Assembly (NCBI GenBank): GCA_012026655.1
Contig: JAAILG010000009.1
Location: 62,001 to 126,000 of the forward strand
Length of the DNA: 64,000 nt
Source of the DNA: Hydrolagus affinis
Lineage: Eukaryota
Direction of reading: 5' to 3'
In this document: one piece after another, positions 1,088-50,147 of the stretch
How the letters are laid out: each line of letters begins with the position of its first letter
How positions within the stretch are numbered: position 1 is the first letter of the stretch
Program-made: the position numbers and the translations under genes
The notes under the pieces: generated by a model
Seen by the model: the letters and a program-made list of their open reading frames with translations, nothing else
Database searches by the model: none
What the model was told of the DNA's origin: nothing

Positions 1088-2589
1088 AGTACAACTTCCA
1101 CCAGGACTTTGGGCACCCGCTCTGAACCTGACCTCATCTCAGAAGACACGAGTGGGCTGAAAGCCAGGACAGTTTAACGGCTGGAGTGGTCCAGGCTTCC
1201 TCTGGGAAGCTAAGGAAATATGTCACACACGCAAACACACACAAAAAAAGAGTCAAACCAGCCAAGCCCACCTCACCAAGAGACGAGGCTCACATTTATG
1301 CCGTGGTTCCGGGAAAGATGGATTGTTTGGAACTTAGAATATGCTGAAGGAAGAGGCAATTTCTGAAATTACTGTCAAAAAATTACATTAATTTGGAACT
1401 GTAATTAAAAGAAAGCAGAAACTCGTCAATCGAGCCATCAAAATAAAACAAACAAACTTGAAGTTTATAGCGGTTATTCATAATAGTTTATATTTATTTA
1501 GTTATTCACTTCTCCCCCTCGTTTATCTGAAAAGCCAATGCGGCCAATCGGAAAAGCCTAATGTAATGCATTACTGTGGACATAACCGTTGTGATGTTGT
1601 AATGTTCACGTCAAGTTAAAGTTTGTTAAATGTAAAAGTTAAGTTCTTGAAGTGGGCTCCTTGTCCAGCCCTTTGCCCACTTTACAATCCTTCTGCACCA
1701 CGTGGACTCAATGTAAATGAAACTGAACCTATTTTATCAACCCTTTTGTTTGTGTTTTGCCTTGGTTCAACTTTAGGCTCGGAGAATTAAATTGACAGGT
1801 CTCGGATAATGGCATGCTTCAGTTGGTGGCTGGGATATGTGCAACAAAGGGTTTGGTTGACTCCGCGTCCAATGTTTCCACCTTATTGGCCTTGCATGGT
1901 CTCACAAACTCCATCACCTTGAATCCCTTCCCTTCATCCCCCCCACAACCCCAGCTCGGGTCTGAAACACTGAATGTCCAGCGCCTTGGGACGTCCTCCC
2001 TAGGTGAAAGGCGCTAACAAGTGCAATTTTATTGTTGTTGCCTACTGAGATTGAGAATTCGCTACTTACCAAACTGCAGTTCCCGCTAGAATGTCTTGTT
2101 GTGTGATGGCAGCTACTACATTCAGAAATGTATTATTCTTGCTATTTCCTAGATAAAAAACAAGTTTCGCTGGCTTTATAATATGTTCTTATTCCAATAA
2201 TAAGCCAAACGCCCTGATGATCTCAGCTATCCTTCTGCCAGTGTCAAGCTCTCTGGGATGCTACCCTGGGTGAGGGGCAGTATACAAATGCAAATTGTTG
2301 TTGTTACTTACCAGTCAGTTAAACTACTAATAAATAAAAAGGGCATCAGAATTTAAATTATTTTTGGAAAATTCTCGAAGAGAACCAGAGCAATCAATAC
2401 TTTCAAATTAAGTTAATTGAAACAAATGAAGGTAAACCAAAGATAACCAATTGGGATTAAAAAAATAAATAAATTGGTGTTCTTTAAAAAAAAGTATCCT
2501 TTAAAAATAATCCTAATTTTCATTCATTCAACGACAAAATAAAACGATTTTTTACTACATTATACCACTCATTTGATTGATGTGTGTTT

Positions 2590-3329: not shown

Positions 3330-3369
3330 TTTCATCACAGAGGTGTATGAGAGGCGTGTGTGACTTCAC
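3330..3369 (+). promoter_or_regulatory. Conserved upstream element of sHSP gene A (CRE-like core TGACTTCA)
   Basis: TTTCATCACAGAGGTGTATGAGAGGCGTGTGTGACTTCAC aligns with elements upstream of gene E (18701-18738, minus) and gene D (16838-16875, minus). Confidence 0.55.
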
Positions 3370-3470
3370 CTTTTACAAACCCGTGTCGTAAAGAAAAGGC
3401 ATTGCCCCTCTCTCGCCCACCTCTTTTCAGAAAAGCCATGAACCTGTAACTGGTGTGAAGTGGGTCAACT

Positions 3471-5864
3471 ATGAATGAAGATGATTCCTTGTTCGATGGG
3501 AATTACGACAATTGGATGGAAAACCTGACACTCCCACCCCCAGAGCCGATCGTTGGGAAGGAGAAATACAGGGTCTGTTTGCACCTGGGAGACATAGGGG
3601 CGGAAAATGTCAACATGTCAGTGCTGGATAACGTGGTGACCGTGGCCGGGCATTTGTCGGAGACGAATGAGGACGAGGATGGAATGATCAGGGAAAGCTT
3701 CCACGGGTTTTCCAACGAATTCGGTCTCCCCCAAGGCGTGAATCCAGATACCCTGACAGCCAACGTGATGGACAACCAAACGCTGGAGATCGAAGCCAAC
3801 TATTTCTCTGAGCCTCTGGATGACACGTTCGTCCCTGGAGAAATCTCCCAACCCGGTATGGACTTCAGCACAATCTCAACAATCTCACCTTCAACTCATA
3901 ACGTAACATCCCAACCTCCGCCCAAGGGATGCAAAAGAAAATCGGGAAACCCCCCAGCCAACACCAGTTGTCCACTCAACGCTTGTGAGCGCAGTGCCGT
4001 GCCTCAGTCAGGTGCTCTGGGGACTTCAATGAATACATCCACTCGTCCACCCAATCCATGTGAATGCAATGCCTTGGCTAAGTCAGCGTTGAGGACTTCA
4101 GCGACCACATCCAGTTGTCCACTCAACCCTTGTGAGCGCAGTGCCTTGCCTCAGTCAGCCCCGGGGACTTCAGTGAATACATCCAGTTGCCCACTCAGTC
4201 CATGTGAACGCAGTGCCTTGGCTCAATCAGCCCTTGGGACTTCAATGAACACATCCAGTTGTCCACTCAATCCCCGTGAACCCAGTGCCCTGGCTAAGTC
4301 AGCGTTGAGAACTTCAGTGAACATACCCAGCTGTCCACTCAGCACCTGTCAACGTCGCCCTGCAGCAAAGAATTCTTCAATGAACACCGCCAGCTGCCCA
4401 CTCAGTCCTCGGGCACGCAGTGCAGTGCCTCATCGCTGCAAACAGAGCTGCCCAAAGAACACCTGCAGCTGTCCTCGAAGACCTTGTCCATGCAATTCTG
4501 CAGCACAGAGGTCTGTAATGAACACCTCCAGCTGTCCTCGTCGTCCTTGTCCATGCGGCAATGCAGCACAGGGATCTGCAACGAACACCTCAAGTTGTCC
4601 AATCAGCCCTTGTCAGCGCCGTGCCATCGCCCAACCACACATCCAAGGATCCTCCGACAATATGTGCACCTTCCCCCGCAGCCCCTCTGTGCGAGGTTCA
4701 CGGGCCAACCAATGTGGCCTGGGAGCCCTTCCAAACAGCCAAAGTAGTCTGGCAGCCCTTCAAACCAGCCAAGTTGGCCCTGGAGCCCTTCAAATCAGCC
4801 AAGTTGGCATGGGACCCCTTCAAACCAGCCAAGGTGTCATGGGACCCCTTCAAACCAGCCAAGGTGTCATGGGACCCCTTCAAACCAGCCAAGTTGGCCT
4901 GGGACCCCTTCAGACCAGCCTAGGTGGCATGGGACCCCTTCAAACTTGCCAAGTTGGCCTGGGACCCCTTCAAACCAGCCTAGGTGGCTTGGGACCCCTT
5001 CAAACCAGCCAAGTTGGCATGGGACCCCTTCAAACCAGCCAAGTTGGCCTGGGACCCCTTCAAACCAGCCTACGTGGCTTGGGACCCCTTCAAACCAGCC
5101 AAGTTGGCCTGGGACCCCTTCAAACCAGCCAAGTTGGCATGGGACCCCTTCAAACCAGCCAAGTTGGCATGGGACCCCTTCAAACCTGCCAAGTTGGCAT
5201 GGGACCCCTTCAAACCAGCCTAGGTGGCTTGGGACCCCTTCAAACCAGCCAAGTTGGCCTGGGACCCCTTCAAACCAGCCAAGGGAGCATGGGACCCCTT
5301 CAAACCTGCCAAGTTGGCATGGGACCCCTTCAAACCAGCCTAGGTGGCTTGGGACCCCTTCAAACCAGCCAAGTTGGCCTGGGAGCCCTTCCAAACAGCC
5401 AACGTCGCCTGGCAGCCCTTCAAAACAGCCAAAGAGGCCTGAGAAGCTCATTGCAGCAGCTCAACCCTTCACTGCCACAGAGATCACGGAGCGTCGTGGG
5501 ATCTGCTTTTAACACCTCCGCTCTATCAAAGAATTCCCTTCCGCTCGCTGGACTGGAAGAACAAGTCAGCCAGACACTCAACTTAAATGGCAACCCTTAC
5601 ACAAGGGACCAGCCAGATGCCCCCCTGAATCAGACCTTTAAGTCCTTATTATCAGAGTCCGTTGCTTCAACCAGATCCATGTTGAAACCTGGCACACGCT
5701 GCCATAGCCCTACTGCTGTTTGCGTCCCACACGTCGACTACAAGATACCTGGCACACGGTGTGTCCCTGCACCCCGCAATCAAAATAGCTGCAAAGCAGG
5801 AAACCAAACGCGCTCTCAGTCACAGCATGGAAATATTAGCGGTATGGATGCCCCTGTTAATTGA
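3471..5864 (+). CDS. sHSP cluster gene A: alpha-crystallin domain + 24-aa Cys/Pro repeats + 10-aa G(L/M)GPLQTSQV repeats + twin PGT motif (797 aa, uninterrupted CDS)
   Basis: The N-terminal KYRVCLHLGDIGAENVNMSVLDNVVTVAGH...FHGFSNEFGLPQGVNPDTLTANVMDNQTLEIEA fits the beta3-beta9 pattern of HSP20/alpha-crystallin domains (F-x-x-x-F-x-L-P-x-x-V-[DN]-P...L-x-I-x-A). The 2.4-kb frame stays open through both repeat arrays. ATTAAA at 6155. Confidence 0.88.
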   Translation: MNEDDSLFDGNYDNWMENLTLPPPEPIVGKEKYRVCLHLGDIGAENVNMSVLDNVVTVAGHLSETNEDEDGMIRESFHGFSNEFGLPQGVNPDTLTANVMDNQTLEIEANYFSEPLDDTFVPGEISQPGMDFSTISTISPSTHNVTSQPPPKGCKRKSGNPPANTSCPLNACERSAVPQSGALGTSMNTSTRPPNPCECNALAKSALRTSATTSSCPLNPCERSALPQSAPGTSVNTSSCPLSPCERSALAQSALGTSMNTSSCPLNPREPSALAKSALRTSVNIPSCPLSTCQRRPAAKNSSMNTASCPLSPRARSAVPHRCKQSCPKNTCSCPRRPCPCNSAAQRSVMNTSSCPRRPCPCGNAAQGSATNTSSCPISPCQRRAIAQPHIQGSSDNMCTFPRSPSVRGSRANQCGLGALPNSQSSLAALQTSQVGPGALQISQVGMGPLQTSQGVMGPLQTSQGVMGPLQTSQVGLGPLQTSLGGMGPLQTCQVGLGPLQTSLGGLGPLQTSQVGMGPLQTSQVGLGPLQTSLRGLGPLQTSQVGLGPLQTSQVGMGPLQTSQVGMGPLQTCQVGMGPLQTSLGGLGPLQTSQVGLGPLQTSQGSMGPLQTCQVGMGPLQTSLGGLGPLQTSQVGLGALPNSQRRLAALQNSQRGLRSSLQQLNPSLPQRSRSVVGSAFNTSALSKNSLPLAGLEEQVSQTLNLNGNPYTRDQPDAPLNQTFKSLLSESVASTRSMLKPGTRCHSPTAVCVPHVDYKIPGTRCVPAPRNQNSCKAGNQTRSQSQHGNISGMDAPVN
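3960..4620 (+). repeat. Coding 72-bp (24-aa) tandem repeat, consensus approx. TSSCPLNPCERSALPQSAxGTSxN, degenerating toward the 3' end
   Basis: ccagttg recurs at 4111, 4183 and 4255 (72-bp period). About 6 good units are followed by degenerate SCPRRPCPC units. Confidence 0.85.
4711..5440 (+). repeat. Coding 30-bp minisatellite, about 24 units (aagttggc[ac]tgggaccccttcaaaccagcc)
   Basis: Exact 30-bp periodicity from 4721 to 5430 with no indels and no spacers; encodes G(L/M)GPLQTSQV. Confidence 0.97.
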
Positions 5865-6513
5865 AGTGAAGACTGGCTCTGTAGAAGCCCAACCCAACTG
5901 CGAGCTGCAAGATGCAACAATGCCCTTCAATTACTCTGAATGAACGAGCTGTGGAAATTCATGAAATACCTTAACAAGGCAGAGTGATTGCTCAGCGGTG
6001 ATTTCAAAATTGGAGCAATGGGTATTTTCCAACGAGGAAGATGGTTTGGTTTGAAGTGAGGTGGTGGGGGGGACGGGGGTGGGGGGACGGGACGGACGAG
6101 GGTTTCTTTAATTTAGAACTTGAAGTGGAAATTCCTCCCAATTTACAGCTGTGGATTAAAGTTCAGGCTTGAGCATTGTATGAGATCTCCAAATTAATAC
6201 ACAAATCAGTGCGCAATTTTATTGCTCTAATGAGCACAGTAAAAATTTGCTGTGATGAAAAGAAAATGCATGCCAAGCATTCAGTGCTTATCCAGAAGTT
6301 ACCCACTCTCAAATAATAAGAATATATTGGTGGATTATAGGGGGAGGGGGGGGATTGTTCCATTAAAATTATTGGGCTTTTCAAATACAATGTTCAAAAA
6401 TATACAACATAATAATGGACATACCACACATTGCATCATAAGAAGGAAACCCGTGTTATCTATTATTGTTTATTTATTTCAACCTCTCAATACTCTCAAT
6501 ATCAGCATTCACG

Positions 6514-6580
6514 TAACAACAACAACAACAAATTACATTTATAGAGCGCCTTTCACGTCGGGAGGACGTCCCAAGGCGCT
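6514..6580 (-). mobile_element. Short retroposon 3' tail (gggacgtcctcccgacgtgaaaggcgct.tataaatgtaatt(tgt)n family)
   Basis: Related copies occur at about 1983-2040 (+), 10585-10642 (-), 25261-25308 (-), 50557-50600, 56595-56660 (+) and 61951-62005 (-). The (TTG)n end is L2-like. Confidence 0.7.
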
Positions 6581-7162
6581 GGAATACAACATACGTTCTG
6601 TACTTTTAAGCCTGAATGTATCATTCCTCGCTCAGAGTACACATACTTAAACACAGGATTGAACAAATCATTTTATTTTCTGTTGAAAACATCAATTGAA
6701 AAGTTTTTAAGGTAACAAGCCTGGAGCATATAGATGCACCTCTGATCCTATGAAAATCATATACCAAGTTGTTGCCAAGTTGACAGATTGCTTTTTTTTT
6801 TCCCCCTTTCAAAAGTTTGCAATTAGGTTGCAGTGAGACACCAGAAGACAATTGGTGAGACTTTCCAAGGCACTCTTTGGAGTCCTTAAGCCTTGGTTCT
6901 TGCCATACTATGCCTGTTCTCTCTGAACTGAGGTCATATTGAGCAAATATAATGGAAAACTAGTGAAGGTTTTAACAATTCAACTTCCTTAGCATCAAGC
7001 TCTCTGAGATACTACCCAGCATGAAGGGAAAGATAAATGCATGTTGTTTGGGCCGAAATTAACAAAAAGGGCCATGATAAAGCTGATGATATATTTCCAA
7101 ATTGCTCAGCAAAATAATTTAATGATTGCAACAATCCTTTCATTTGATATAGAGCCTTTTTT

Positions 7163-7515
7163 ATAATAATAATCCTTGCATTTGATATAGCGCTTTTTAC
7201 ATCTTCCAGACATCTCATAGCGCTTCACAGAATATACAGTAAAGTGAATTGACTGTATATTTGTGGGCGACATGTGGCAGCCAATTACGCACAGCAGTAA
7301 TTGGATTCATGGATTCAATTGTCCAATCAATGCGTTAAGCGCTCTGTGTGGAGGGCATTATATAAATTGAAGTTGTTGTTGTTGTTTACCAATTCATCCC
7401 TTTATTTATTATTTTGTGAGGGATTATTATTAGGAGAGTGGAGTAAGGAAACTTGCCCAAGGTTTCGCCCTGCCTGGTATTGAACACAGGTCACACTCTC
7501 GCTTGTAAAGGCCTT
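7163..7515 (-). mobile_element. SINE copy (degenerate head, internal insertion)
   Basis: Shares aataatccttgcatttgatatag...gcgcttcacagaatatac.gtaaagtgaattgactgtatatttgtgggc and ggagtaaggaaacttgcccaaggtttcg with the full copies at 26816 and 39522. Confidence 0.8.
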
Positions 7516-8441
7516 TGCAACTTCCTACACCCATCTACACTACTTACCCGAGTCTCCGATCTTAGTGTTGTATGTAAACTTGGATACAAAACTTTCTATT
7601 CCTTCATCCAAGTCATTTATATGCATGTATATATATATATATATATATATAGATTATATATACACGGTAAATAGCTGAAGTCCCAGTTCAGACCCCTGGG
7701 GGACACCACTTATCACATCTCTAATTGGAGAATGTTCCTTACTCTCTGTTTCCAGCCTCCCAACCAATTGCCAAGTCAAGTCACCTCCGCCTCCTAGTGT
7801 TTCCATTTTCGTTGAAAGAGTTACTGAGAAGCCTTATTGTAATCCACATAGCAGGTTCTCTGCAAAACAACACCTCACCTGCCATCTTGGGAGCCTGACA
7901 ACACTCTGTCATGTAAAACAGCCACACTTCAATGGTGAGCGGGTGAGTGTTGTGTTGTCCCATAATGCCAGGGACCATGATCTGTGTCCGTGTTAAGCGT
8001 TGTGGTCACGATGACCTCTCACTTACACAACAACAACAGCTTCGATTGATTCAGCGCCCTCCACGCCGGAGACGGCGTCTCAGAGCGCTTATAAGGGGAC
8101 TGATACGCTTTCTCAGGGGTCGTGATTAGTCCACCACGACAACAAAAGGCAACGGACCTGACAATGAACTTCCAAATCCATGTGCTCCCCTCAACACGCT
8201 ACATGATGTTTTTTGGGGGAGAGATTTGATTTGACGTGGTGAAAACCGCGGAAAGTGATGCTTCAAACCCACTAGCTTGTGTGATCTCACGCTTACGCAC
8301 CGGCAGACAGACCCCCGTGTAGCTTTCGGGAAGTTATGAAACCTTTTTTGATTTACGCAAAAGTCGGACTTTTAAACCTCGGATTAAACCTCGGTCCGGA
8401 TTTGATATTTAGAGGAAAACCAAGCGGAGGTATGAACCAAC

Positions 8442-9098
8442 ATGGATCCTCGCCGTAACAAGTTTTACGTCTGTTTAAACTTGGGGAACATTTCCCCGGA
8501 GAATGTGCAGGCTTACATCACGGACAGGATCGTGGATATTATTGGGAAAAGCGAGCAGGTGACCGAGGAGGCGGACGGGATGATCAGGAGGAACTATCAC
8601 GGCTTTTCTAACAAATTCGGGCTCCCACCGGGAGTAGACCCCAACACCTTGCTGCTCACTGTGCCCGACGGGAGGACCTTGATCATCGAAGCCGAATACC
8701 TCAAACACGAAGATCAGAACCCAAACCCCGCGGATTCGACCTGCCCTCGAATGGCGCCCGACCCCTGGAGCAGGTCCATCTACCACTACCCCCCACCGCC
8801 CGTCCCCACGCCGCGCACAGTGTTTCACACCAACTCTGCCTACGATCCCACCTCCGCCGATGAGAACTCGGGAGGTTTGATCTCATCCAGGGTCCCGACC
8901 CCTTTCCACCCGGTGCCCATGCCTCGACAGACCGTCACGCACAATGTCTCGTTGCCCTCCCAGTCTCCGGTGTGGTACGGGTCCTCCTCGGCAATCCACC
9001 CCAAGACGAGGTCGAAGAGGAGGAGACACCATTCCTATCACGAAGGCATGGCGGCTGACAACATGTCCCACGTACAAAGGATGAACCAGACGTTTTAA
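8442..9098 (+). CDS. sHSP cluster gene B: alpha-crystallin domain + Pro-rich tail (218 aa)
   Basis: KFYVCLNLGNISPENVQAYITDRIVDIIGK...DGMIRRNYHGFSNKFGLPPGVDPNTLLLTVPDGRTLIIEA is a clear paralog of the gene A domain. Good Kozak context (aacATGG). AATAAA at 9424. Confidence 0.88.
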   Translation: MDPRRNKFYVCLNLGNISPENVQAYITDRIVDIIGKSEQVTEEADGMIRRNYHGFSNKFGLPPGVDPNTLLLTVPDGRTLIIEAEYLKHEDQNPNPADSTCPRMAPDPWSRSIYHYPPPPVPTPRTVFHTNSAYDPTSADENSGGLISSRVPTPFHPVPMPRQTVTHNVSLPSQSPVWYGSSSAIHPKTRSKRRRHHSYHEGMAADNMSHVQRMNQTF

Positions 9099-9177
9099 AG
9101 CAGCCGGGAAATGCCAGACGTACAAGAAACCTTACTTAAAACACAAACCAACAGAACGCACACACACACGCACACAC

Positions 9178-9277
9178 NNNNNNNNNNNNNNNNNNNNNNN
9201 NNNNNNNNNNNNNNNNNNNNNNNNNNNNNNNNNNNNNNNNNNNNNNNNNNNNNNNNNNNNNNNNNNNNNNNNNNNNN
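9178..9277. other. Assembly gap (100 N) adjacent to a (CA)n microsatellite
   Basis: Run of exactly 100 N following cacacacacgcacacac; true length unknown. Confidence 0.99.
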
Positions 9278-9987
9278 TGTTGGATTTCCAGTAACTCCCA
9301 CTGGTCCAAGCGGTCGCTCCCGAGATGAAACTGTTCAATACCATTGCACCCAGACTTGCGCAGTAACAGTTGTCCAAAAGCAATTGGCATCCGGATGCAT
9401 TGATGTGTCTATAACCACATTTTAATAAACACTCACTGACAACTGGGATATATCATCATTGGACAATGACTTGTATGTTTTTTTTTAATATTTTTTATCG
9501 GCATAGCATTGTACCATTGAGGGGGGAAAGTTTTGTAAACTAGGGTTTTACACATCAATTGTTCACCAAACAAGAACTGGAATAGATTCGTGTTCAGTAG
9601 TATTTTGTAATTCAGCACATTTGGGTGCTGTGTTTATAGCGTAGAGTATAGCTACAACCTAACTATGGGTGGGTGCTGGGTGACTCTACAGTGTTGTAGC
9701 TCACTTGAAAGTGCATCAATAGAAAATAACATGTCTCACCACGTTAAAACATTTTTTTTTAAAAAAATCCCTTTGCAGTAATTACAGTAAAGTGTAGTGG
9801 CTGTTTTTGGAAGCAAACATGATAATTTTGTACCAGCATGATACCACAAATAGCTATGAGTTAAATAGCAAATTTATCTAAAGGATTACTGACCAGTACT
9901 CAAGTTTTTTTTTAAAGTCCAAGATCACCTGAACAATAATCTCAGATCCAAGCATCCTGGGACTAAACCCTGCATGAGGGTAGCACA

Positions 9988-10063
9988 TAAGAGCATAAGA
10001 AGTAGGAGCAGGATGAGGCCATTCAGCCCATTGAGCCTGCCCCGCTATTCAATCATGGCTGAT
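9988..10063 (-). mobile_element. CR1-type LINE 3' end fragment
   Basis: ataagaagtaggagcagga.gaggccattcagccc is the reverse complement of the gggctgaatggcct..tcctgctcctacttcttat CR1-type tail. Related pieces lie at about 29015-29060 and 41170-41415. Confidence 0.65.
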
Positions 10064-11696
10064 ATTCCATTCAAATTGTTTTTGATGTTAATGTCTCATC
10101 TGAAGAATTACATCTCTGAGAATGCAACGCCCCCCCTTAATAACGGGGAAAGTTTTCACTTTTTGCAGCACTAATTCTTCAATTTTGTTGGACTACAGTT
10201 CACCCCACAAGCAAAAGGACTTTCTAACAAGGGACAAACATCTACTACTGAATTTGCTCAACAATCCACAACCTCTATAAAGAGAGACATGCATACTTAC
10301 CAATATCTCTGCCTTCCTATTTTAGAATAGCTGTTTAGAAGCTGTCTAGAAGCAGACTTTTTTTTATGGAGATTCACTTCATGTACCTTTTTGTGTGACA
10401 TTATCAAAGTTCACAGCAAGTTAGTTAATCAAGATGACCATGTCTTCATATTTTTTGTATCTTCATATCTTTTTTCAATATTTCTGTTTTGATCTTTTGA
10501 TGATTGTGGTATAGTTATTATACACTGATAAATGAACCAACTCTCTTTTGGAGAACAACCAATTTAGTTGCATTTCCAATCTGCTTAGGACGTCCTCCTG
10601 ACACGAAAGGTGCTATACAAGTGTAATATTGTTGTTGTTGTTTGTAAACTTGTTGAATCCGAATGCAAGGATTATTATTATACTTGAAGCTTAGGACAGA
10701 AATCATGTGTATGCAGTTCACAGCATCCTGAAATGGAGGTGAAGCTAGGAAAAGGATCTTTCAGCTACAAAGATATTTCTATTCGGGTAACTTCTGTTAT
10801 TTCACTACTTATTGAATTGTTTTCTTTGTGGAGCCTTCTCCAAGTGGTGACAAGTGACAAACATACCTCGTCAGGGGGAAACGTATCCATGTAGGATTCT
10901 GTCCCATATTACAGAAGGCACACAGACTGTTTGCCCACAGTCACTCCTTGATCCCTGCATTCAAAAGAATAATAATCCTTGCATGTGATACAGCGCTTTT
11001 CACATCTACTAGACATCTCAAAGCGCTTCACAGAATATACGGTAAGGTGAACTGATTGTATATTTGTGGGTGAAATATAGCTACGATCCACCGGCTTTGA
11101 ATACAATCCCCCAGCAGTGACACTGTGAGGTTCTGCGCCAGTGACATCATGAATGAGAAAGATTGCTATCTCTGATCCATTGTTTAATTCATGACATAGT
11201 GGGTCACAGCTTCAAAAAATAAGCTTCCACCAACAATCACTTTTTAGAGCAGGGAAGCAAGAATTGATTGTACAAAACATTGGTAAGTGTAAAGATATCT
11301 CCCTATCAAATCCAAATATCCAACCCATTGAATATCGGTCCCAACCTACTTCCAAAGACGTGTTGAGGTGTTATATCAAATGCAAGGATTATTATTATCA
11401 TTACTGAATCAAAGTATCTCTAATATTCCAAATTCTGGCCTCAACCACCCTTCCTGATTTCCGAATGACTGATGAATTGTGTGAATAGGAGATGGCTTAG
11501 TTCAAATTTTAGTAGGAAGGAGAGTGAAAAACTGGGTTTTAAAGTTACCCCCCTCTCCCCCCACTCCCTCTCTCAACAAGAATGAAAATGACAACTTCAG
11601 CATTATACATTCATTTCCTAGTGAGAAATATCTAAAATACACATATCATCTTTTTTTCCATATGCTGTTGTTTTCAGGAAAATGAACCTGTGAATT

Positions 11697-14600
11697 ATGC
11701 AAAATTTTTCTGCAAAGGTTGCTTCGGAATCTGGCCCAAGATCAGGAATTCAGACTGAAGGTTTAACGAAAGAGAAAGAGGAGATTAAGGGAGGTGGAGA
11801 GCAGCCTGTAGCACAATGTGTGATGTCCCAAGAGCCATTTTGCTTTTCTACCAGTCTCCAGGGTGTTTCTCCAGAGAAAGTAGTGGTGAAGGTTAAGGAC
11901 AGGAAGGTGTCCATCTGCGGAGAACACATTGAGAAGAAAGAAGATGATGGAATAATCAAATATACCTTTCACGGTTTTTCAACCATATTTGATCTCCCCC
12001 TGGAAGTAGATCCAAATTCTCTAACTGTCACTGTGTCAGATGGTAGAACTTTGAAAATTGCATCCCAGCAAGTCACATCATACGACACCAAAAGCAAGGA
12101 AAATGATGCTGATGCTATGAACAGTTACTCTCCAACTCTCTCCTTGGAGGCAAAACCCCCAGTATGCAATGCAGATTCAGAAAGTATTCCAGTCTTTGCC
12201 AAAGAAACAAACATCATGAAACAAAATGAGCCGGAGGCAAAAGGTATCTTGATATCAATTCCAAAGGCACAGACCCCTAAAGGCACCCTCACCAACCAAT
12301 TACCTGCCACAAAAGAACCTTATCCACCAACACCTCTTATAGAAACAATTATAGTGCCTACTCTGCAGACACACACTACCACAACACAAACTGTGGACAC
12401 GTTATTCATCCCAGCACAAGCCACAAATGTAAGCACCTTTCCAATGTCTGGTGTGGAACTGCGCACCAAAATGATAAATGAACCTGAGATACTTACCAGC
12501 CTCATTCTTAACTTGCGGGCACTGTTATCTGCTGCCCCTGAGTCACAAAGGAACTTTGTGCCAGCCATCCTTGAGGCAGATGTCAATGTACCCAATCCGG
12601 ACGTCCATACTATCTCAGTACCTAACCTGGATACATCCCCCACCCAGATATCTAACTCAGAAATGCACAACATTCTTTTATGTTTTTCTGAGGTGCACAA
12701 TGTCCCAGGTGATGCTCCCGAGACACTTACCTGCCTTGCACCCTACACTAAAGTACATATCAACCCAGCAAGTCCTCCTGAGACTTACAAAAATACTCTG
12801 ACACACATGAATGAGACAAGCATAGCAGTGGGCATCCCCGAGTTACATACTGATACAAAACCAACCAATGACACCAAACCATTGCTACCCTTAGAGGCAT
12901 TCACCACCCCAATACCACTCCCAAGGAAACGCAACATCGAAACAGCAGCCGCTCCTGAGACAAGCACCTCTCTTTTATTCATCCCCAGGAACCATGATCC
13001 GTCCCTGGTGCCCACCAGTGAGAAACGCACAGCCCCAATACCTGCCCCAAGGAGATACAATATCTTCCCAGCATACACTTCTGAGAAACAACCGTTTCCT
13101 GTGCCTGCTCCCAGGAGATACAGCATCTACCCTGCATACAATCCCGAAACACACACTTTACCAAAACCTGCCCCAAGAAGTTACAGCATCACAGCAGTAC
13201 CCACTACTGAGTCAATAAGAATTTCTGTACCTCACCCAATGATGAATGATGAAGCTCTCCTGCTAGCCACTCATGATACAAGCAGTGGCTCTATAGCTAA
13301 CTCTGAGAAATGTAAATCCACATTACCTACTCCTGATACAAGCTTCACTGATTTATATATGCCCAGGAAACGGAGCACTTCCCCAACACAACGTTCAGAG
13401 ACTCACACTTCTGTATATGGCCCAAGGAGAAACATCTACCCAGCAAACGCTCCTGTACCTGCTCCGAGGAGATACATCAGCTCCCCAGCATATGTTCCTA
13501 AGACACTCACTCCTTCTGCGACTCATTCAGGGAAACATGAAGCATCCACTCCTGATATGCATGTCTCTCAAAAGCATGTCCCAAAGAAGCACAGCTCCTG
13601 CACAGCATCCACTCCTGAGAGGCACACCTCTCATGCCAAGACCCCAAGAAAATACTCCAACTCCCCAGGACTCAATGCTGAGTTAGAAACTTCTCCAGAA
13701 CCCATCCCAAAACGATACAGCACCTCACTAGCACAAGCTCCTGAAACCTCTCCTGTGCATGATCCAAAGCCACATGAGGCTTCACAAGTCTCCGCTCTTG
13801 ATACAATCACCTCTCGTGGACAACCCAAGAAGAAGCACATCTCTTCCTCAACACCTGCTCCCGACCAACAGATCTCTCCCAGAAGTGACCAGAGACAAAG
13901 TGGCTTCTCCCCAGAGCGCAGTGCTGAGAAACACAAATCTCCTAAACATAATCAGAGGAAACACATCCCTTTTCCTGAACCTACTCCTGAGCAATACACC
14001 TCTCCTGGGCAAACCCGTAGGAACCAAGTCCGCTCCCCAGTATCTGCTGATCAGCAGCACATCTCTCCCATACTCACCCCCAGGAATCGTAGCCCCTCCC
14101 CAACAGCCAATCCTGATGCAAATAATTCTTCCTTACAATCCCCCACGAAACGCAGCCCCTCTCCATTATCCACTCCTGAGATAAGTGCATCTCATATACA
14201 TTTTTCCAGGAAACACAAAACGTCTCAAACACACCAAACTAATACAAGCACCTCTACTGTTCAACACCCACCAAAACGCAGCCCTTCCCCAATATCCACA
14301 GTGGAATTAAATACTTCTCTTATACATTTCCTCAGGAAAAACAGCAACTCCCCGGTCATGACTCCTGGCATGAGCTCTTCTCCCATATCTACCCCAGAGA
14401 AGGAAAACACATCCCCAGTACTTACTCCTGAGAAAAGCAGCTCTCTTATATATATGCGCAGTACTTCGCCCTTACCACCTCCTGAGAAAATCTCTCCCAT
14501 CTATAAACCATTGAAACGCAGCACCTCCCCATTGACAACTCCCGAGTTGAGCCCTTCTCTTTTACATTTCCTCATGAAACACAGTTCCGCAATATCCAAT

Positions 14601-14786
14601 CCTGACCCAACCACTTCTCCCGTTCATACTCCCAGGAAACGCAGCCCTTCTCCATTACCCGCATCCGAGATGAGCACCTCTCGCAAACATAATACCAGAA
14701 ATCGTAGCACCTCTCCAGTGTCCCCTTCAGGTTCGAGGAGCACCTCTCCAATATTGCCCAGAAAATACAAAACTTCCCATACTTAA
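11697..14786 (+). CDS. sHSP cluster gene C: alpha-crystallin domain + about 770 aa of degenerate 20/21-aa S/T/P-rich repeats (1029 aa, uninterrupted CDS)
   Basis: PFCFSTSLQGVSPEKVVVKVKDRKVSICGEHIEKKEDDGIIKYTFHGFSTIFDLPLEVDPNSLTVTVSDGRTLKIAS is an alpha-crystallin domain. The frame is open for 3.1 kb. A probable 5'UTR intron spans 11283-11677 (ttg|gtaagt ... tgttgttttcag|). Confidence 0.88.
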   Translation: MQNFSAKVASESGPRSGIQTEGLTKEKEEIKGGGEQPVAQCVMSQEPFCFSTSLQGVSPEKVVVKVKDRKVSICGEHIEKKEDDGIIKYTFHGFSTIFDLPLEVDPNSLTVTVSDGRTLKIASQQVTSYDTKSKENDADAMNSYSPTLSLEAKPPVCNADSESIPVFAKETNIMKQNEPEAKGILISIPKAQTPKGTLTNQLPATKEPYPPTPLIETIIVPTLQTHTTTTQTVDTLFIPAQATNVSTFPMSGVELRTKMINEPEILTSLILNLRALLSAAPESQRNFVPAILEADVNVPNPDVHTISVPNLDTSPTQISNSEMHNILLCFSEVHNVPGDAPETLTCLAPYTKVHINPASPPETYKNTLTHMNETSIAVGIPELHTDTKPTNDTKPLLPLEAFTTPIPLPRKRNIETAAAPETSTSLLFIPRNHDPSLVPTSEKRTAPIPAPRRYNIFPAYTSEKQPFPVPAPRRYSIYPAYNPETHTLPKPAPRSYSITAVPTTESIRISVPHPMMNDEALLLATHDTSSGSIANSEKCKSTLPTPDTSFTDLYMPRKRSTSPTQRSETHTSVYGPRRNIYPANAPVPAPRRYISSPAYVPKTLTPSATHSGKHEASTPDMHVSQKHVPKKHSSCTASTPERHTSHAKTPRKYSNSPGLNAELETSPEPIPKRYSTSLAQAPETSPVHDPKPHEASQVSALDTITSRGQPKKKHISSSTPAPDQQISPRSDQRQSGFSPERSAEKHKSPKHNQRKHIPFPEPTPEQYTSPGQTRRNQVRSPVSADQQHISPILTPRNRSPSPTANPDANNSSLQSPTKRSPSPLSTPEISASHIHFSRKHKTSQTHQTNTSTSTVQHPPKRSPSPISTVELNTSLIHFLRKNSNSPVMTPGMSSSPISTPEKENTSPVLTPEKSSSLIYMRSTSPLPPPEKISPIYKPLKRSTSPLTTPELSPSLLHFLMKHSSAISNPDPTTSPVHTPRKRSPSPLPASEMSTSRKHNTRNRSTSPVSPSGSRSTSPILPRKYKTSHT
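12480..14770 (+). repeat. Degenerate coding 60/63-bp tandem repeat in gene C
   Basis: PxPxPR units start at 12909, 13035, 13098 and 13161 (multiples of 63 bp). RSPSP/RSTSP...TPE units recur about every 21 aa near the C-terminus, with a recurring ctcctgag core. Confidence 0.8.
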
Positions 14787-16123
14787 TACAACCACTGGTC
14801 TCTTGGACACATCCAGAAAATGCAGCACTTTTTCCCTACCCCAACCTATCACACTTCCAAAGCACCAGCTTCTGAAACAAATACCAACTCCTGAGGCATG
14901 TGCTTGGGCAATAGTTACCTCGTCTGGATGGGTAATAATTGAACCCTGTATTACATACTAACCCAATTTTCTAACCTGGGAAAATCTTCCTCCCTTTGAA
15001 ATCCTAATTTGATTCATAGTGCTCTGAATTATTCATGATGCAGCTTTTAATATTAGGTGCAAATTAATTAGCTAGAAACCATAGCAGTGGTACAATATTA
15101 CCCCATCCACTTCCAAGGAAATGCAAAAGAGTGACTGCCAAAAGACTGACTACCTGGCACCAAACTCTGCCCACCATAAGCTAACATTCATCTTTTAGCA
15201 ATTAAGGAAATGTTTGGGATTCATATAATAAGCGGAAGTGAACTGTTGGAAACTTGTGGTTTGACAATATGGATAACCTTGAATTGCCAACAAACCAAAC
15301 ATTCCTGATCTGTTACTCAGTGTGATTGCTGAAGAAAGTAGCTTGCTTCCACATCTTGCAAGTACGGTTTGCAAAGACGGAATACCTGGCTTTGCAGTGA
15401 TTTGCCTTAGAAGCACCGACCAGTAGCTGTTTAATAAAATTTACAATTGATGTTGGTTGCAGTTGGCTACATTTGTTCGTATGCTGTATAATGCTGTCTC
15501 TTGAATCATACATTTTATCAAGAGAAAATTAATTGTCTGACACATGTGGAAACCCATCACATTGCTTAAAATTATGCAAATCAAGCTAAGATTTCTATGT
15601 ATTCCATACACACATGGAAATTCCAGAGACAGATTGTTGAAATGGAATGCATGTTCTCTCTCCCTAGAGGGACGCATCCTACTTACCTAATATTGACAGG
15701 TATTAGGGCACAGGTTGGCAAGAACCAAGGCTTGGGGACCCCAGAGTGTGGTTGTACTCCTGGAATCCAACCATCTAAAACTTCATAGCTTGCCATTGAT
15801 ATCACTGTCTGGCAAGCTTTTCGACTGCTTGTTCAGCAAGGACAACCTCTCGCGTGAGCGCAAGCAAGTGATATAAGTGAACTAATTGGACTAAATAGAG
15901 CACACATCAAATTTTTATTTTATTACCCAGTTTCTGTTCCAAACTGTCAGGTTTTGAGCTCTGTTGTGACTGACAAGCACACCCTCAAAGATTCAGAAAT
16001 GTCTTCTTTCAATACAGTTAGTTGTTTGCATTCAGAATTAACGTGCAACTACTTTCTGCATTGCCAAAATACACCCGACTTTCTCAGTACCTAAAGGCCT
16101 TGTTTCTCTTCCTCATTCTGAAA

Positions 16124-16783
16124 TCAGCGCCATTGGGAATGAGGAGGAACAGTTTGGCGCAAGGTTGGTGGGTCAGTGAGAGGGTCGTTGAAACTGATTG
16201 AGGCATTAGGACAGGTGGTTCCGGGTATTGGATGATGACAGTGAGTAGCCATTTGGACTATTTGACCATTGCTTCGTGTCCCTGGAACTGGCACGAAACA
16301 GGGAGTCCAAACAAAATTAGCCTTTGTGCTACCTTTCACGTAGTTGGTGGTGTATTTTAGAAAGATCGGGACATTAGTAGAGTCCGATTGTTCCCCACCC
16401 CAAGCTGTCTCCTTCACCTGCACATGGTCAGGGTAGCAGGAAGCTTCGACTGTGATGATTTTCTCGTCGATGATTGTAGCGGTCAAGGTGTTTAGATCCA
16501 GTTTGGCAGAGAGTGGCAGGTCATTCGAGAAACCACAATAGTTGTATCTGCTTATTCCGGAGATGTCCTTAACCTTCTGGAATTGCTCTCCAGAGACATT
16601 CAGGGTTCTCCCGGTGACCATTACGTTCACATGTTCTGGATCCGTTCCTGCCAAGTGCAGGGAGAGAGAAAAATTGCATGGTTTCCTTTTTCGCCTTCCC
16701 ATCATTGGGTTAATTTCCAGTCCATTGTTGGCACTTCTGCGATCTGCGTAAGATCCATTATCATCCATAATTTGTGGTAACAT
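16124..16783 (-). CDS. sHSP cluster gene D: alpha-crystallin domain + twin PGT Cys/His tail (219 aa)
   Basis: FSLSLHLAGTDPEHVNVMVTGRTLNVSGEQ...SRYNYCGFSNDLPLSAKLDLNTLTATIIDEKIITVEA; co-linear paralog of gene E. AATAAA on the minus strand at 15914-15919. Confidence 0.85.
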   Translation of the reverse strand: MLPQIMDDNGSYADRRSANNGLEINPMMGRRKRKPCNFSLSLHLAGTDPEHVNVMVTGRTLNVSGEQFQKVKDISGISRYNYCGFSNDLPLSAKLDLNTLTATIIDEKIITVEASCYPDHVQVKETAWGGEQSDSTNVPIFLKYTTNYVKGSTKANFVWTPCFVPVPGTRSNGQIVQMATHCHHPIPGTTCPNASISFNDPLTDPPTLRQTVPPHSQWR

Positions 16784-17819
16784 AACTTTCTGAAAAGGCA
16801 GCTACATGAAACAGATGTCTTCTTGCAACACTGACTTGTAAGCATGACACACACTTGAACACCCTCTGTGACGAAATTAATTGTACTGTATAAAACTTGA
16901 TTTGAAAAAGCAAAATGTTACAAAATATATGCACAAAGTTTCCACAGGCAGGTATTCCATGTGCCTGTCAAAACCCGAGGGGTCAGTAGAGCCCAGAAAT
17001 GCCCAAATGAGATGATATATTGCTAGCTAATGGATTGTATAGTTATAATCTTAAAATAAATAAGGATTATGGTAATGTTGACAATGCACTAAAGCTGTTC
17101 CTCGTGCGTGCTGAAAGATTTCTGCTTACAAATCTGTGTCAACCTGGCTCAGTGATAGCACCCCCGCCTCTGAGTAAGAAGATTGTGGGTTCAACCTCGG
17201 TCCTTAGCGCTCCAATGCAATGTTAGGGATAGTGGGGATGGTGTTGACTTTCCATCCTTTCAATGAAAGTTTAAACTAATCCCATCAGGTGGATGTTAAA
17301 TATCCCATGGTATGATTCAAAAATAAGTGAGTTTCTCCCAGTGTCCTTGCCAACAATTCCCCCAAATAAAAATAGGTAATTCAATCCATGGCTATTTGCA
17401 GGACATGGCTGTGCGCAGCAGGCTTGCTGTCTCAATTTGTCCACAAAGCACACATGGTCAAAAAACTCTTTAAAGTAAATCCTGTGAAACTCTTTGAAAC
17501 ATCTCAACAACGTGATAAGGCGCTGTATGAAATGTAATAATAATTATTAAGTAACCTTCTATGGGGTAGATACAGTAGATTCTTACCTCTGGAAAATGAT
17601 CCACTAATTAACTAACAATTGGTTGTTACTTACCAGAGAGGTAACTTAGCTAACTGGAAAAACTGGAAAAAATCTTGAGGATGAAACTTTATTACAGCTG
17701 CTGATCAAGTAGTTGGTATTTCCAGCTCAAAAAAAAATGTTTACAGACAAAAAGCCCTTATTCCTTAATCACGGAAGAATGAGCCTGGCAAACTATACGG
17801 TGTTACTCAAGGACGTTTG

Positions 17820-17844
17820 AGTGTGTGTGTGTGTGTGTGTGTGT
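17820..17844. repeat. (TG)n microsatellite
   Basis: Perfect dinucleotide run. Others: (TA)n at about 7628-7651 and (TG)n at about 51078-51097. Confidence 0.95.
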
Positions 17845-17983
17845 TGTCCCGTGGTCAATTTACATGTCAGCACAAAAAAAAGGGTTTGTTTCATTCTTTT
17901 ATTCTTCTCTCACGTTGTTCTGATGGGAGGTGGGGAAACTGGTTTCTCGTTCTCGGGTCCTTGTTAATATCCTTGGAGTGACC

Positions 17984-18595
17984 TCAAGAGCTCTTCATTG
18001 TCTGTAAGCTAGAGATGAGGTTTGGTAAGAATCCGGAGATATCTGTAACCATACCCGGGGAGTTGTGGCAGAAAGTCCCAGGCAATGGGTGGTTGCACAC
18101 TCGGATCAACCCAGTCTGTTGGGATTCGCAGAGAGTTCCAGGTATCGGCAAGTAGCAGGGTGTCCAGAAAACGGGTTCCTCCATTAGAGAGACAGAGTGG
18201 GAAGAGTATTCGAAAGTGATGGGAAGAAGCTTTTGGGGGATTTCATCGGCATCCTGATGCTGGATTTTCAACAGGGTGTCTGTCTTGTGGTAAAAAGCTT
18301 GCACCGTGATCACTCTGTCATCCACAATGACCACCGCCAGAGTGCTCAAATCCAACCTTGGAGGCAGGTGGAGCTCGTTGGAAAAGCCACAGTAGTTGTA
18401 CCTGCTGATGCCTTCGCCCTCCTGAATCTTGCGTACATGTTGGCCTGAGATGTCCAATTCCCTGCCCCTGATGGTGACTTTCACGTTACGGGGGTCGATA
18501 CCTGCCAAGTTCAGGCGAAGTTCAAACCTCTCCTGTTGACTTTCGGCTGGGATCGGTCTCAGAGTGGAACCGTTTCCCGTTTCCATCTCAACCAT
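17984..18595 (-). CDS. sHSP cluster gene E: alpha-crystallin domain + twin PGT Cys/His tail (203 aa)
   Basis: ERFELRLNLAGIDPRNVKVTIRGRELDISGQH...GISRYNYCGFSNELHLPPRLDLSTLAVVIVDDRVITVQA. The tail WTPCYLPIPGT...CNHPLPGTFC matches gene D. AATAAA on the minus strand at 17898-17903. Confidence 0.87.
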   Translation of the reverse strand: MVEMETGNGSTLRPIPAESQQERFELRLNLAGIDPRNVKVTIRGRELDISGQHVRKIQEGEGISRYNYCGFSNELHLPPRLDLSTLAVVIVDDRVITVQAFYHKTDTLLKIQHQDADEIPQKLLPITFEYSSHSVSLMEEPVFWTPCYLPIPGTLCESQQTGLIRVCNHPLPGTFCHNSPGMVTDISGFLPNLISSLQTMKSS

Positions 18596-18700
18596 TCCTA
18601 CCTTTCAGGAGAGGGAGCAACACAGATCGACTTGTGGCTTTCATTTCCTTTCCACCCCCCCTGCCCCCTCCCTCACCCTCCCCCACCCAAAGACTTGGTA

Positions 18701-18738
18701 GTGAGATCACACACATCTTAGGCACCTCTATGATGAAA
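18701..18738 (-). promoter_or_regulatory. Conserved upstream element of sHSP gene E (CRE-like core TGATCTCA)
   Basis: The minus strand reads TTTCATCATAGAGGTGCCTAAGATGTGTGTGATCTCAC, about 105 bp upstream of the ATG. This is nearly the same spacing as in gene A. Confidence 0.55.
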
Positions 18739-19343
18739 AATTACAAATGTAATAAATAATGTTGAACTATCCGCTTGGTTTGATGCATACAATTAATACC
18801 AGCGGATTAAACAGAAAGGTTCATAGTATCTGAATGCTGAAGTCAACAAGCGAGACTCAACCACAGTTTCGCAAGGAACACAATTACTCTATCTCTATCA
18901 TGTAAGGAAAAACAGCAAGCATGCTGGATGGAAGCTGAATTGCACACAGATGGTGAGGGACATGGGGACACAAGTACATGAGCATCTAGCTCTAGTTGAA
19001 TGCTGTATGGGTGGCTCACACACGGCATTCCAGGAAGGGATGTGAGGAAGAGATGAATGGTACAACTTTTCTTCATTCAATTTAGAATTACACACTCATG
19101 GGACTTATTCGTTCCTCTTCTGTCCCTGGCTGCCAGTTTACTGTCGTATTGTTCTGGTTGGAGAATGTTTGACACATGATAGAAAACCATCTGAAAGTAT
19201 TGTAGACACAAGACGAGATTGCAATAACAACTTGCATTTATACATCGTATACATTTTTACATAGAATACTGTCTGGGTGTGCTTCACAGGGATCACTCAC
19301 TGGCAGACCGGCTCCCCAAATGCACTCGGGGTTGTCATTGCAA

Positions 19344-23241: not shown

Positions 23242-24177
23242 GTGATTATTGGAAACAAAATCCACTCAGAACAAATTCAGTCAAAGACCCAAAGAATTTC
23301 CACCAGTTATCTAACGCATGGTTTATGGAAAAAACAACCAGAAAAGCTAACATCACGACCCGTGGAGAAACAACACAATATTCCAAAGACTGATGCACTT
23401 TTCATACACTTAGACAAAAACAATTACTATCAAATGAATCACTTCCCGATACAAACCAACATGGAATATGCAGGTCAGCAGTGGGAGCAATGGGGAGATT
23501 ATTATCCCGAGATTTATTCCCAAGGATTTTACGAAGGATATTCTTTCAACGGTGTTCTTGGTAACCATACAGATTATTTTCATCAACAGAATTATTTTAA
23601 TCATCCTACAATGTCATTAAGCAGGAGGTCACAGAATGTTCTCCTCAATCATGAAGCATCTCATCTAATAGGACAGCAGCAGGTAGAACACTACCAACAA
23701 ACTAACTCTTTACAAAGAACAGGATGTCCTGGTGGAAGTTTCTCATCAACCTCTCCTAGGGTGGTTCTAACTTCCAGGTCTGTCTTGTCTGCCAGCACAA
23801 GTGAAACAGAAACAGCAAAGCAGAACGAAATGCCCCAAATGTGTATCCTTGCTCTTGCCATGATGGTAGCTGGTATCCCCACAGTACCTGTGCCCAGAGT
23901 TAAAGCAGAGGATATGATATTGGCAGCTCAAAAGTTTAGAGCTGACAACCCAAATTTAAGTGGCGACATAGACAAAATGATGAAGGATAAAGAAGAGAGA
24001 AAAAGATCTTTTACTAAGGAGTACATGTTCTCTAATAATAGTACAGAGGAAAGAATCGACTGGAAGAGAACAAGGGAAAATACAATCCATTATCCACAAA
24101 TCAGTGTCCTGGTATTAGAAAGTGATGATCAGGCTGATGGAAAGAGACATAAGTCAAATGACTTGATGCTCACATAA
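23242..24177 (+). CDS. SPATA25: SPATA25-like (spermatogenesis-associated 25) main coding exon
   Basis: [37 protein letters not shown] matches my recollection of the SPATA25 hallmark ([32 protein letters not shown]), and an upstream GCPGG is also shared. The ORF begins right after an acceptor (tttttttgtacatag|gtg, 23241). A candidate upstream donor gag|gtgagt lies at 21848. The start codon is unresolved. AATAAA at 24509. Confidence 0.8.
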   Translation: [311 protein letters not shown]

Positions 24178-50110: not shown

Positions 50111-50147
50111 TAAAGGAGCCATAAAGAGAAGGTGGTGATGAGAATAA

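Follow-up and report, generated by a model that had tools for sequence, protein, structure and literature searches.

Clustered genes with an N-proximal alpha-crystallin domain and long, divergent tails in Hydrolagus affinis, and their relatives across cartilaginous fishes

The gene cluster and its alpha-crystallin domains

Five genes encoding proteins with an alpha-crystallin domain (ACD), the domain of small heat shock proteins (sHSPs), are clustered in a 64-kb stretch of the genome of the chimaera Hydrolagus affinis (contig JAAILG010000009.1, positions 62,001 to 126,000), hereafter called the window. The genes were named A to E, and were recognized in the list of open reading frames (ORFs) of the window. 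Genes A (3471-5864, 797 aa), B (8442-9098, 218 aa) and C (11697-14786, 1029 aa) reside on the plus strand, genes D (16124-16783, 219 aa) and E (17984-18595, 203 aa) on the minus strand. Positions and lengths reproduce exactly those given in an earlier note made from the sequence alone. The note had also assigned an HSP20 domain to each gene, and all five products indeed exceed the gathering cut-off of the Pfam HSP20 profile (PF00011, 20.8 bits), with scores of 39.3 (A), 37.3 (B), 34.8 (C), 24.6 (D) and 31.7 bits (E). Pfam matches span residues 28-110 in A, 5-92 in B, 43-122 in C, 32-115 in D and 19-101 in E. In our own profile the domain starts at residue 28 in A (residues 28-115; 3552-3815, plus strand), 3 in B (residues 3-90), 43 in C (11823-12080), 33 in D (16424-16690) and 19 in E (18281-18541). 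The signature G-[MI]-[IS]-[RK]-x-x-[FY]-[HC]-G-F-S-[NT] noticed earlier is found in the alignments of all five genes.

An in-frame stop is found 1-6 codons upstream of the ATG of each gene, and the ACD therefore begins 4-43 residues from the N-terminus. The N-terminal domain of ~50-90 residues which precedes the ACD in canonical HSPB1-8 proteins is missing in the genomic ORFs of A to E. The unusual architecture that had been pointed out, an N-proximal ACD followed by a long tail, belongs to real HSP20 genes. Residues 7-16 of A, just before the ACD, form a motif of the type F-x-G-R-D-F-D-N-W, which is kept from chimaera to shark and skate (proteins P0006, P0011 and P0174), and is possibly what remains of the N-terminal region of sHSPs. 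The only run of N in the window, an assembly gap at 9178-9277, lies outside all ORFs. It begins 80 nt past the stop codon of B (9096-9098), 2.4 kb ahead of the ATG of C, and adjoins a CA-rich microsatellite. Since no ORF spans the gap, the continuity of the five frames is unaffected.

By sequence, HSPB1 (E 1.5e-6) and alphaB-crystallin provide the solved ACDs closest to gene B. Compared to the HSPB1 domain, B carries a loop three residues longer, and Asn in place of a conserved Arg. The fold was tested for E only, by an AlphaFold model built from a 22-sequence alignment. The predicted local distance difference test score (pLDDT) of the model is >90 at residues 21-100 and ~93 at residues 121-130, and falls below 50 in the last 60 residues. 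The top matches found by Foldseek in the PDB are all sHSP domains. The best agreement is with zebrafish alphaA-crystallin (3n3e; VIA-align, Z 11.5, root mean square deviation 2.4 over 97 residues); the match covers residues 21-131 of the model and 69-166 of the chain, and thereby takes in the segment with the IXI strand beyond the core domain. At Z>=8 the model is matched by 67 chains, sHSPs throughout among the matches listed. In the model, gene E adopts a metazoan ACD fold, against which the IXI strand is docked. The common view of small heat shock proteins is that of chaperones of 12-43 kDa. AlphaA-crystallin, alphaB-crystallin and HSPB1 share the fold of the E model (Z 8.8-11.5), but are only ~20-26% identical in sequence, have a loop shorter by three residues and the conserved Arg, and carry the N-terminal domain absent in A to E. 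Within the cluster, giant tails are found only in A and C.

The IXI-type motifs are V-P-I in D (residues 138-140; 16364-16372, minus strand) and L-P-I in E (residues 124-126; 18218-18226, minus strand). Both align to the IPI/VPI of HSP30-type proteins; in the E model L-P-I is placed with a pLDDT of ~93 and is directly followed by a strand at residues 126-129. Because the segment past the ACD aligns in this way, D and E look like sHSPs which keep the ACD and the IXI anchor; to judge from the alignments, they also look like proteins which have lost the N-terminal domain and gained ~70 further residues. The sole IXI-like motif of B is a distant VPM.

One position sets the five domains apart. In the Arg column of strand beta6+7, which we take to be the R120 position of alphaB-crystallin, none of the five window genes carries Arg (four Asn, one Thr). 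Arg is similarly missing in all 34 domains of the family described below (18 Asn, 7 Ser, 4 Lys, 3 Glu, 2 Thr), but occurs in 134 of 228 other domains, which carry Gln in 42 cases, Lys in 37 and Asn in one. The three ODF1 proteins of frogs all have Asn. Thus, 21 of the 22 Asn counted at this position in 265 domains fall in the family or in ODF1.

General resources were less informative. The ESM Atlas returned for gene E only generic chordate HSP20 clusters, all below 0.9. A scan of NCBIfam gave only archaeal and bacterial Hsp models, all sub-threshold. No hydrophobic N-terminus and no membrane-like segment is found in A to E, and the proteins are therefore not secreted.

Repeats, composition and conservation of the tails

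The earlier note described the tails as mutually different, and closer inspection bears this out. For the most part they are of low complexity. The tail of A hosts three arrays detected by Tandem Repeats Finder, all on the plus strand: Cys/Pro-rich repeats of 24 residues (72 nt, 5.2 copies; 3964-4342), Cys/Pro repeats of 21 residues (63 nt, 2.3 copies; 4453-4600), and GPLQTSQ-type repeats of 10 residues (30 nt, 24.6 copies; 4705-5441). At the protein level, periods of 24 (z 11.3) and 10 (z 30.9) stand out against shuffled sequences. The A tail is 4.8% Cys and 11% Pro, and its repeats differ from simple C-X-P triplets; Cys is under 1% in B and C. The tail of C carries no DNA-level array, but a degenerate repeat of 21 residues (12954-14783, plus strand) is evident at the protein level, with z 9.6 for residues 420-700 against shuffles, and z 9.1 at period 21 and 10.1 at period 42 for residues 700-1029. 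Toward the C-terminus the density of SP/TP climbs, starting at 1-3 and reaching 7-11 per 100 aa; the motifs P-x-P-x-P-R-x-x and [KR][KRH]SxSP each occur five times. No match to the C tail was found in the ESM Atlas. The tails of B, D and E measure ~100-130 residues and are not repetitive.

A twin PGT module is nonetheless shared by some of the tails. It spans residues 159-191 in D (16211-16309, minus strand) and 144-176 in E (18068-18166, minus strand; pLDDT ~40 in the model), both recognized in sequence and alignment, and its spacing is common to D, E and their orthologues in Chiloscyllium. Gene A has it too, as a twin PGT(R)C module at residues 738-764 (5682-5762, plus strand), with PGT at residues 740 and 760. 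Gene A and the Heterodontus protein P0006 have only two regions in common, the first 114 residues (49% identity) and 55 C-terminal residues including the twin PGTRC (40% identity, E 1e-9).

In all pairs of orthologues the ACD is better kept than the tail, with identities ranging from 64 to 91% and from 45 to 64%, respectively. Gene A is 84.7% identical to its Callorhinchus orthologue in the ACD, 49.5% in tail residues 116-420, and 63.7% in the C-terminal 146 aa. The corresponding values for ACD and tail are 90.8 and 64.3% for C and Callorhinchus P0175, 70.7 and 46.3% for D and Chiloscyllium P0003, 63.5 and 44.7% for E and Chiloscyllium P0004. The 24-residue Cys/Pro block of A is present in the Callorhinchus orthologue. 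In contrast, the 10-residue array has no counterpart there, ~200 aa being absent, and repeats within the tails are therefore young.

Sequences closely related to the window were found in one run, X1, which appears to be DNA and covers positions 13000-18800 evenly, at ~2% divergence. Both coding indels listed for this run are in frame, a 6-nt deletion at 14652 in the C tail and a 3-nt insertion at 18580 near the N-terminus of E. The non-coding indels listed measure 1, 1, 12, 4 and 6 nt.

The motif [IVL]P[IVL] was counted over all the tails of the family, and found 34 times against 15.8 expected, a figure not reached in any of 500 shuffles. HSP20 is the sole Pfam match in all ten long family members analyzed; in two of them, P0021 (20.1 bits) and P0023 (18.0 bits), the HSP20 score stays under the gathering cut-off of 20.8 bits.

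The family across cartilaginous fishes and its nearest relatives

Relatives were sought with an exhaustive HMMER search, using a profile built from the five window ACDs. The search yielded 998 matches at E<=1e-3, and 49 at 1e-10. The 26 top representatives, with single-domain scores of 60-118 bits, were taken as the family. Their length varies from 116 to 1110 aa; the ACD lies within the first ~140 residues, and a tail makes up the remainder. The exception is Chiloscyllium P0001 (GCC24974.1), in which two ACDs are placed further in. The source was looked up for 22 of the 26 representatives. Four are unlabelled (Logan-only); the remaining 18 have an organism, and all come from cartilaginous fishes, namely Callorhinchus milii, Chiloscyllium punctatum, Scyliorhinus canicula, S. 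torazame, Heterodontus francisci, Rhincodon typus, Narcine bancroftii, Leucoraja erinacea and Amblyraja radiata, nine species in all. The earlier note suspected that such proteins may sit in databases as uncharacterised loci, and relatives were in fact found under names as uninformative as 'hypothetical', 'uncharacterized' or 'SHSP domain-containing'. Others are filed as 'mucin-4-like', 'EF-hand calcium-binding domain-containing protein 5-like' and 'transcription factor MYB120-like', which are misleading labels for members of this family. The literature searched, mostly at the level of titles and abstracts, contains no description of the family, in keeping with the suggestion that it is undescribed. 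Word-indexed searches are of little help in finding it. A protein search with B alone gave no matches, and a search with a 13-sequence family alignment retrieved two family members only.

The relationships of the genes were analyzed in an IQ-TREE phylogeny of 58 ACDs and 88 columns. The rows were chosen from 176 proteins, with many multi-domain matches omitted, and comprise 5 window genes, 27 family domains, 3 frog ODF1, 7 HSP30-type, 2 hagfish, 6 other metazoan and 8 bacterial outgroup sequences. A single clade (94/91, just below starred support) unites the window genes with the family. HSP30-type domains, including those from sharks, cluster in a separate clade (98/92, starred) and the window genes fall outside of it. 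Within the family, the partners of A are proteins of Chiloscyllium, Heterodontus and skate (97/95). B pairs with P0014 and P0018 of S. torazame and with the second P0001 domain (97/88), C with Callorhinchus P0002 (100/99), D with Chiloscyllium P0003 (99/94) and E with Chiloscyllium P0004 (100/84), all with starred support. Since four of the genes (A, B, D and E) have their own orthologue in elasmobranchs, the paralogues predate the split between chimaeras and elasmobranchs. The genes form a clade of their own, apart from HSP30-type sHSPs. The family is not a local expansion, as had been supposed in the earlier note, being spread over cartilaginous fishes at large, with a separate elasmobranch orthologue for each of these four genes.

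Conservation extends to the order of the genes. An ORF at 59-1087 (plus strand) is the C-terminal tail of another gene, which starts upstream of the window. The ORF hosts no Pfam domain in a Pfam scan, but its match to residues 310-627 of Callorhinchus P0174 (XP_007883821.1) reaches 52% identity over 326 aa (E 8e-71). P0174 is a fused model of 1220 aa, with an ACD gene in its first half and the gene A orthologue in its second. The match to the first half of P0174 identifies the ORF as the end of a sixth family gene and, as the two halves correspond to the ORF and then to gene A, the gene order is conserved in Callorhinchus. At least one Callorhinchus gene model therefore merges two genes. In our reading P0001 may similarly fuse two genes, since its two ACDs pair with different subfamilies in the tree.

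The assignment of A to E to the family is near certain. Judged on sequence, the five genes belong to the sHSP superfamily, and fall outside both the HSPB1-8 type and HSP30; nor are they demonstrably members of ODF1. They are best described as members of a new sHSP subfamily, spread throughout cartilaginous fishes and endowed with a new architecture.

The closest named proteins outside the family are ODF1 proteins of frogs, with single-domain scores of 59.6 and 53.0 bits, against ~52 for HSP30-type proteins. The sample included three frog proteins; two had been named ODF1 by the depositors, the third is labelled 'hypothetical'. Gene B matches frog ODF1 with 56.2 bits (35% identity over 78 residues, without gaps), and a shark HSP30C-like protein with 43.5 bits (30% identity). 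The testis-specific HSPB9 is absent from the 10 non-family matches whose names were looked up, and no HSPB9 sequence was compared. A word-indexed search with the alignment of the three frog ODF1 sequences retrieved only itself. ODF1, also known as HSPB10, is a testis-specific protein derived from sHSPs and located in the outer dense fibres of sperm; it is the odd case of an sHSP turned into a structural protein, and in mammals carries C-terminal Cys-X-Pro repeats. Frog ODF1 and the family have in common a diverged ACD, of equal length, and Asn at the Arg120 position. The layout is reversed, as frog ODF1 has ~70-95 residues before the ACD and almost none after, whereas A to E have hardly any before the domain and 100-900 residues after it. 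An sHSP domain set in a structural Cys/Pro-rich protein is reminiscent of gene A, but the frog models lack the Cys/Pro tail, and A features Cys/Pro-rich repeats of 24 and 21 residues. ODF1 is a single gene in tetrapods; cartilaginous fishes host many clustered paralogues.

Plausible functions, upstream elements and genomic surroundings

The genes plausibly encode ACD-based polymer proteins building intracellular structures, likely in the male germ cell; we regard this reading, taken as a whole, as evenly balanced between being right and wrong. The ACD would serve as N-terminal assembly module and, together with the IXI motif in D and E, would drive self-association. Dimers would form via the long beta6+7 strand (predicted at residues 63-76 in E), and the dimers of D and E would be joined by contacts of the IXI motif with its groove. 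The tails would act as spacers, which could be cross-linked by disulfides at Cys residues or phosphorylated at S/T-P sites. The product of the assembly would be an insoluble intracellular scaffold rather than a stress chaperone, possibly acting in accessory structures of the sperm tail or in another cytoskeletal element of sperm. The male germ cell is the most likely site of action, because ODF1 is the closest named relative and SPATA25, a spermatid gene, is adjacent to the cluster. The SPATA25 ORF (23242-24177, plus strand, 311 aa; Pfam SPATA25 60.9 bits, cut-off 27) sits 4.6 kb past gene E; it was called from a GTG, and the true start is thus probably a downstream ATG. As stated in a review (PMC11276731), the first structures at axonemal doublets 3 and 8 arise in cartilaginous fish, which makes a role in the sperm tail plausible, short of proof. 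Taken by itself, the predicted role in sperm is somewhat more doubtful than the reading as a whole; it is favoured indirectly by the rank of frog ODF1 among the named matches, the Arg-to-Asn change common to both, the adjacent SPATA25 gene and the absence of heat-shock elements near the promoters. It is tempting, if rather unlikely, to extend the picture further: the cluster would provide building blocks of the sperm accessory structures of cartilaginous fishes at doublets 3/8, co-orthologous with tetrapod ODF1, the ACD having been recruited in the ancestor of jawed vertebrates, expanded to a dozen or more genes in this lineage, reduced to one gene in tetrapods, and lost in teleosts.

Several observations weigh against the reading of ACD-based polymer proteins in the male germ cell. 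The sisterhood of frog ODF1 and the family in the maximum-likelihood tree has a weak support of 87/54 and involves three frog sequences. Placing ODF1 with other metazoan sHSPs is not rejected by the approximately unbiased (AU) test (delta lnL 0.71, p 0.454). Mammalian ODF1, HSPB9 and HSPB1-8 are not included in the tree. ODF1 carries a coiled, leucine-zipper-like region ahead of the ACD, and the RDLRQ-type region found there in all three frog ODF1 proteins has no counterpart in A to E. Adjacency to SPATA25 does not indicate co-expression, and a search of sequencing runs returned no RNA run containing the stretch. The main text of a report on the semen proteome of a catshark (PMC11083954), which covers differentially abundant proteins only, has no SHSP entries; the proteome includes 535 sperm proteins. 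Compared to run X1, the C tail exhibits 24 non-synonymous and 6 synonymous changes, and the resulting pN/pS ratio of ~1.27, obtained from small numbers, is compatible with relaxed constraint as well as with rapid adaptive change. Finally, the motif [IVL]P[IVL] is not enriched in A (1 vs 2.1 expected) or C (3 vs 3.1 expected). The idea that the giant tails are multivalent carriers of IXI motifs was rejected, as the motif occurs at expectation in both genes.

Other explanations were considered. The family might consist of germ-cell, nuclear or granule proteins, in which the ACD oligomerises and basic tails rich in S/T-P, resembling SR or SPKK sequences, bind nucleic acid or drive condensates, for instance in the perinuclear theca or in sperm chromatin, instead of forming fibres of the flagellum. 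Gene C, whose last third is basic, with 7-11 S/T-P per 100 aa and KRSPSP-type motifs, would suit such a function, as would the lack of further Pfam domains in the tails of 10 of 10 long relatives. Yet, the tail of A is rich in Cys/Pro and Gly/Gln and is not basic, those of D and E are short and non-basic, and ODF1, the closest relative with a name, belongs to fibres and not to chromatin, all of which makes the hypothesis rather improbable. Alternatively, the proteins may have a structural or protective role in a non-gonadal tissue of cartilaginous fishes, and their likeness to ODF1 may reflect convergent loss of the chaperone-type dimer interface. The outcome of the AU test leaves room for this view. 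However, Asn at the Arg120 column is nearly confined to the family and ODF1 (21/22) and, given that signal peptides and membrane segments are missing, the proteins are not of the secreted matrix or mucin type; we consider the non-gonadal role less probable still.

It might also be argued that A to E are HSP30-type stress-inducible chaperones with disordered extensions. HSP30-type proteins are the next-best named matches. HSP30/HSPB11-type proteins of Latimeria, Chiloscyllium and teleosts, as well as HSPB11-like proteins of hagfish, have the same loop length between the strands flanking the signature, and an IPI/VPI motif in register with the IXI of D and E. Like A to E, the HSP30 genes lie in clusters and their coding sequence is uninterrupted; they are intronless. 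HSP30-type proteins differ in that they keep Arg (FRR/FRQ), their N-terminal domain is normal and their C-terminus is short; the N-terminal domain is absent in A to E, and 0 of 34 family domains have the dimer-interface Arg. Sharks possess both HSP30C-like genes and long-tailed family genes, and the former are separate genes of the other clade. We know of no chaperone sHSPs with tails of 700-900 aa. HSP30/HSPB11 genes carry heat-shock elements (HSEs) in the proximal promoter, but no HSE-like site (one mismatch at most) was found within 400 nt of the five ATGs; over the whole window such sites number 27, against 23.1 expected, and hence are not enriched. That the family is made of inducible chaperones is accordingly improbable by a wide measure. 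Least credible of all, and hardly to be entertained, is that the ORFs are decaying, not expressed, or artefacts of gene prediction. The pN/pS ratio of the C tail could be taken in this sense. In contrast, frames of 203-1029 aa are open, orthologues in nine species have ACDs 64-91% identical, both listed coding indels of run X1 are in frame, and the termini of A are kept across sharks.

An entire family, kept since before the split between chimaeras and sharks, appears to have gone the structural way of ODF1. The marks of this route are the loss of the N-terminal domain, the change of a residue at the dimer interface, and the growth of the tails up to ~900 residues. Should the proteins reside in sperm, they would provide a molecular handle on the sperm accessory structures of cartilaginous fishes and on the origin of ODF1. 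Should they not, they would represent a natural experiment in the use of an ACD and an IXI motif as a polymer module.

The sequences upstream of the genes share short elements. Two boxes, TCRTCAYAGAGG and GTGTGTGAYYTCAC, precede A (3332-3369, plus strand) and E (18701-18736, minus strand). The first box alone precedes D (16863-16874, minus strand), while the second, with one mismatch, precedes B (8277-8290, plus strand) and thus accompanies A, B and E. Exact copies of the 12-mer TCRTCAYAGAGG number three over the whole window, each 80-141 nt ahead of the ATG of A, D or E, on the strand of the gene; allowing one mismatch adds a fourth match, elsewhere in the window. Upstream ORFs of three codons (Met-Asn-Leu-stop) lie before A (ATGAACCTGTAA, 3438-3449, plus strand) and C (ATGAACCTGTGA, 11682-11693, plus strand). 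Their consensus, ATGAACCTGTRA (R = A/G), is found in the window only at these two places, 0.02 occurrences being expected. Boxes and upstream ORF patterns were derived from the very sequences in which they were counted, so that the counts show specificity, not discovery. The upstream ORFs may represent a form of translational control common to ancient paralogues. In B, a related ATGAACC overlaps the ATG out of frame. A pyrimidine tract followed by TTTTCAG is located 6-50 nt ahead of the ATG in A, C and D (~3415-3428, 11665-11678 and 16790-16802, respectively). TTTTCAG is a candidate splice acceptor, and A, C and D, instead of lacking introns, may begin with a non-coding exon. Isoforms in Narcine, which differ only in N-terminal extensions set on the same body, would fit this view. 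The full palindrome of the cAMP response element has no match in the window. The sole perfect HSE-like site of the window, GAAnnTTCnnGAA (2367-2379, plus strand), falls in the interval that separates A from the upstream family gene, 1.1 kb ahead of the ATG of A.

Interspersed repeats at 15522-15909 and 17074-17655 flank D and E, and have a summed contig depth of tens of thousands in run X1. Reads of three single-cell RNA runs from another organism, laid out under a different code, matched only these two repeats, almost all of them in part, apart from one pair within C; the pattern is uninformative on expression. Copies of a dispersed repeat give rise to spurious ORFs with a common peptide-like stretch at 26735-27109, 37773-38093, 39518-39781, 50013-50414, 50877-51152 and 62174-62602. 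Exon-like ORF pieces of a radical-SAM methylthiotransferase, searched exon by exon, are scattered over 38832-44528 (minus strand). One piece has a CxxxCxxC motif and matches Pfam Radical_SAM with 32.9 bits, another weakly matches TRAM (17 bits, under the cut-off); the gene presumably resembles CDK5RAP1. The region 48000-52000 is a GC-rich island (0.45-0.46 vs ~0.35 in the surroundings), which contains overlapping spurious ORFs rich in Gly, Arg and Pro at 49544-49972, and is possibly the CpG-island promoter of a neighbour gene.

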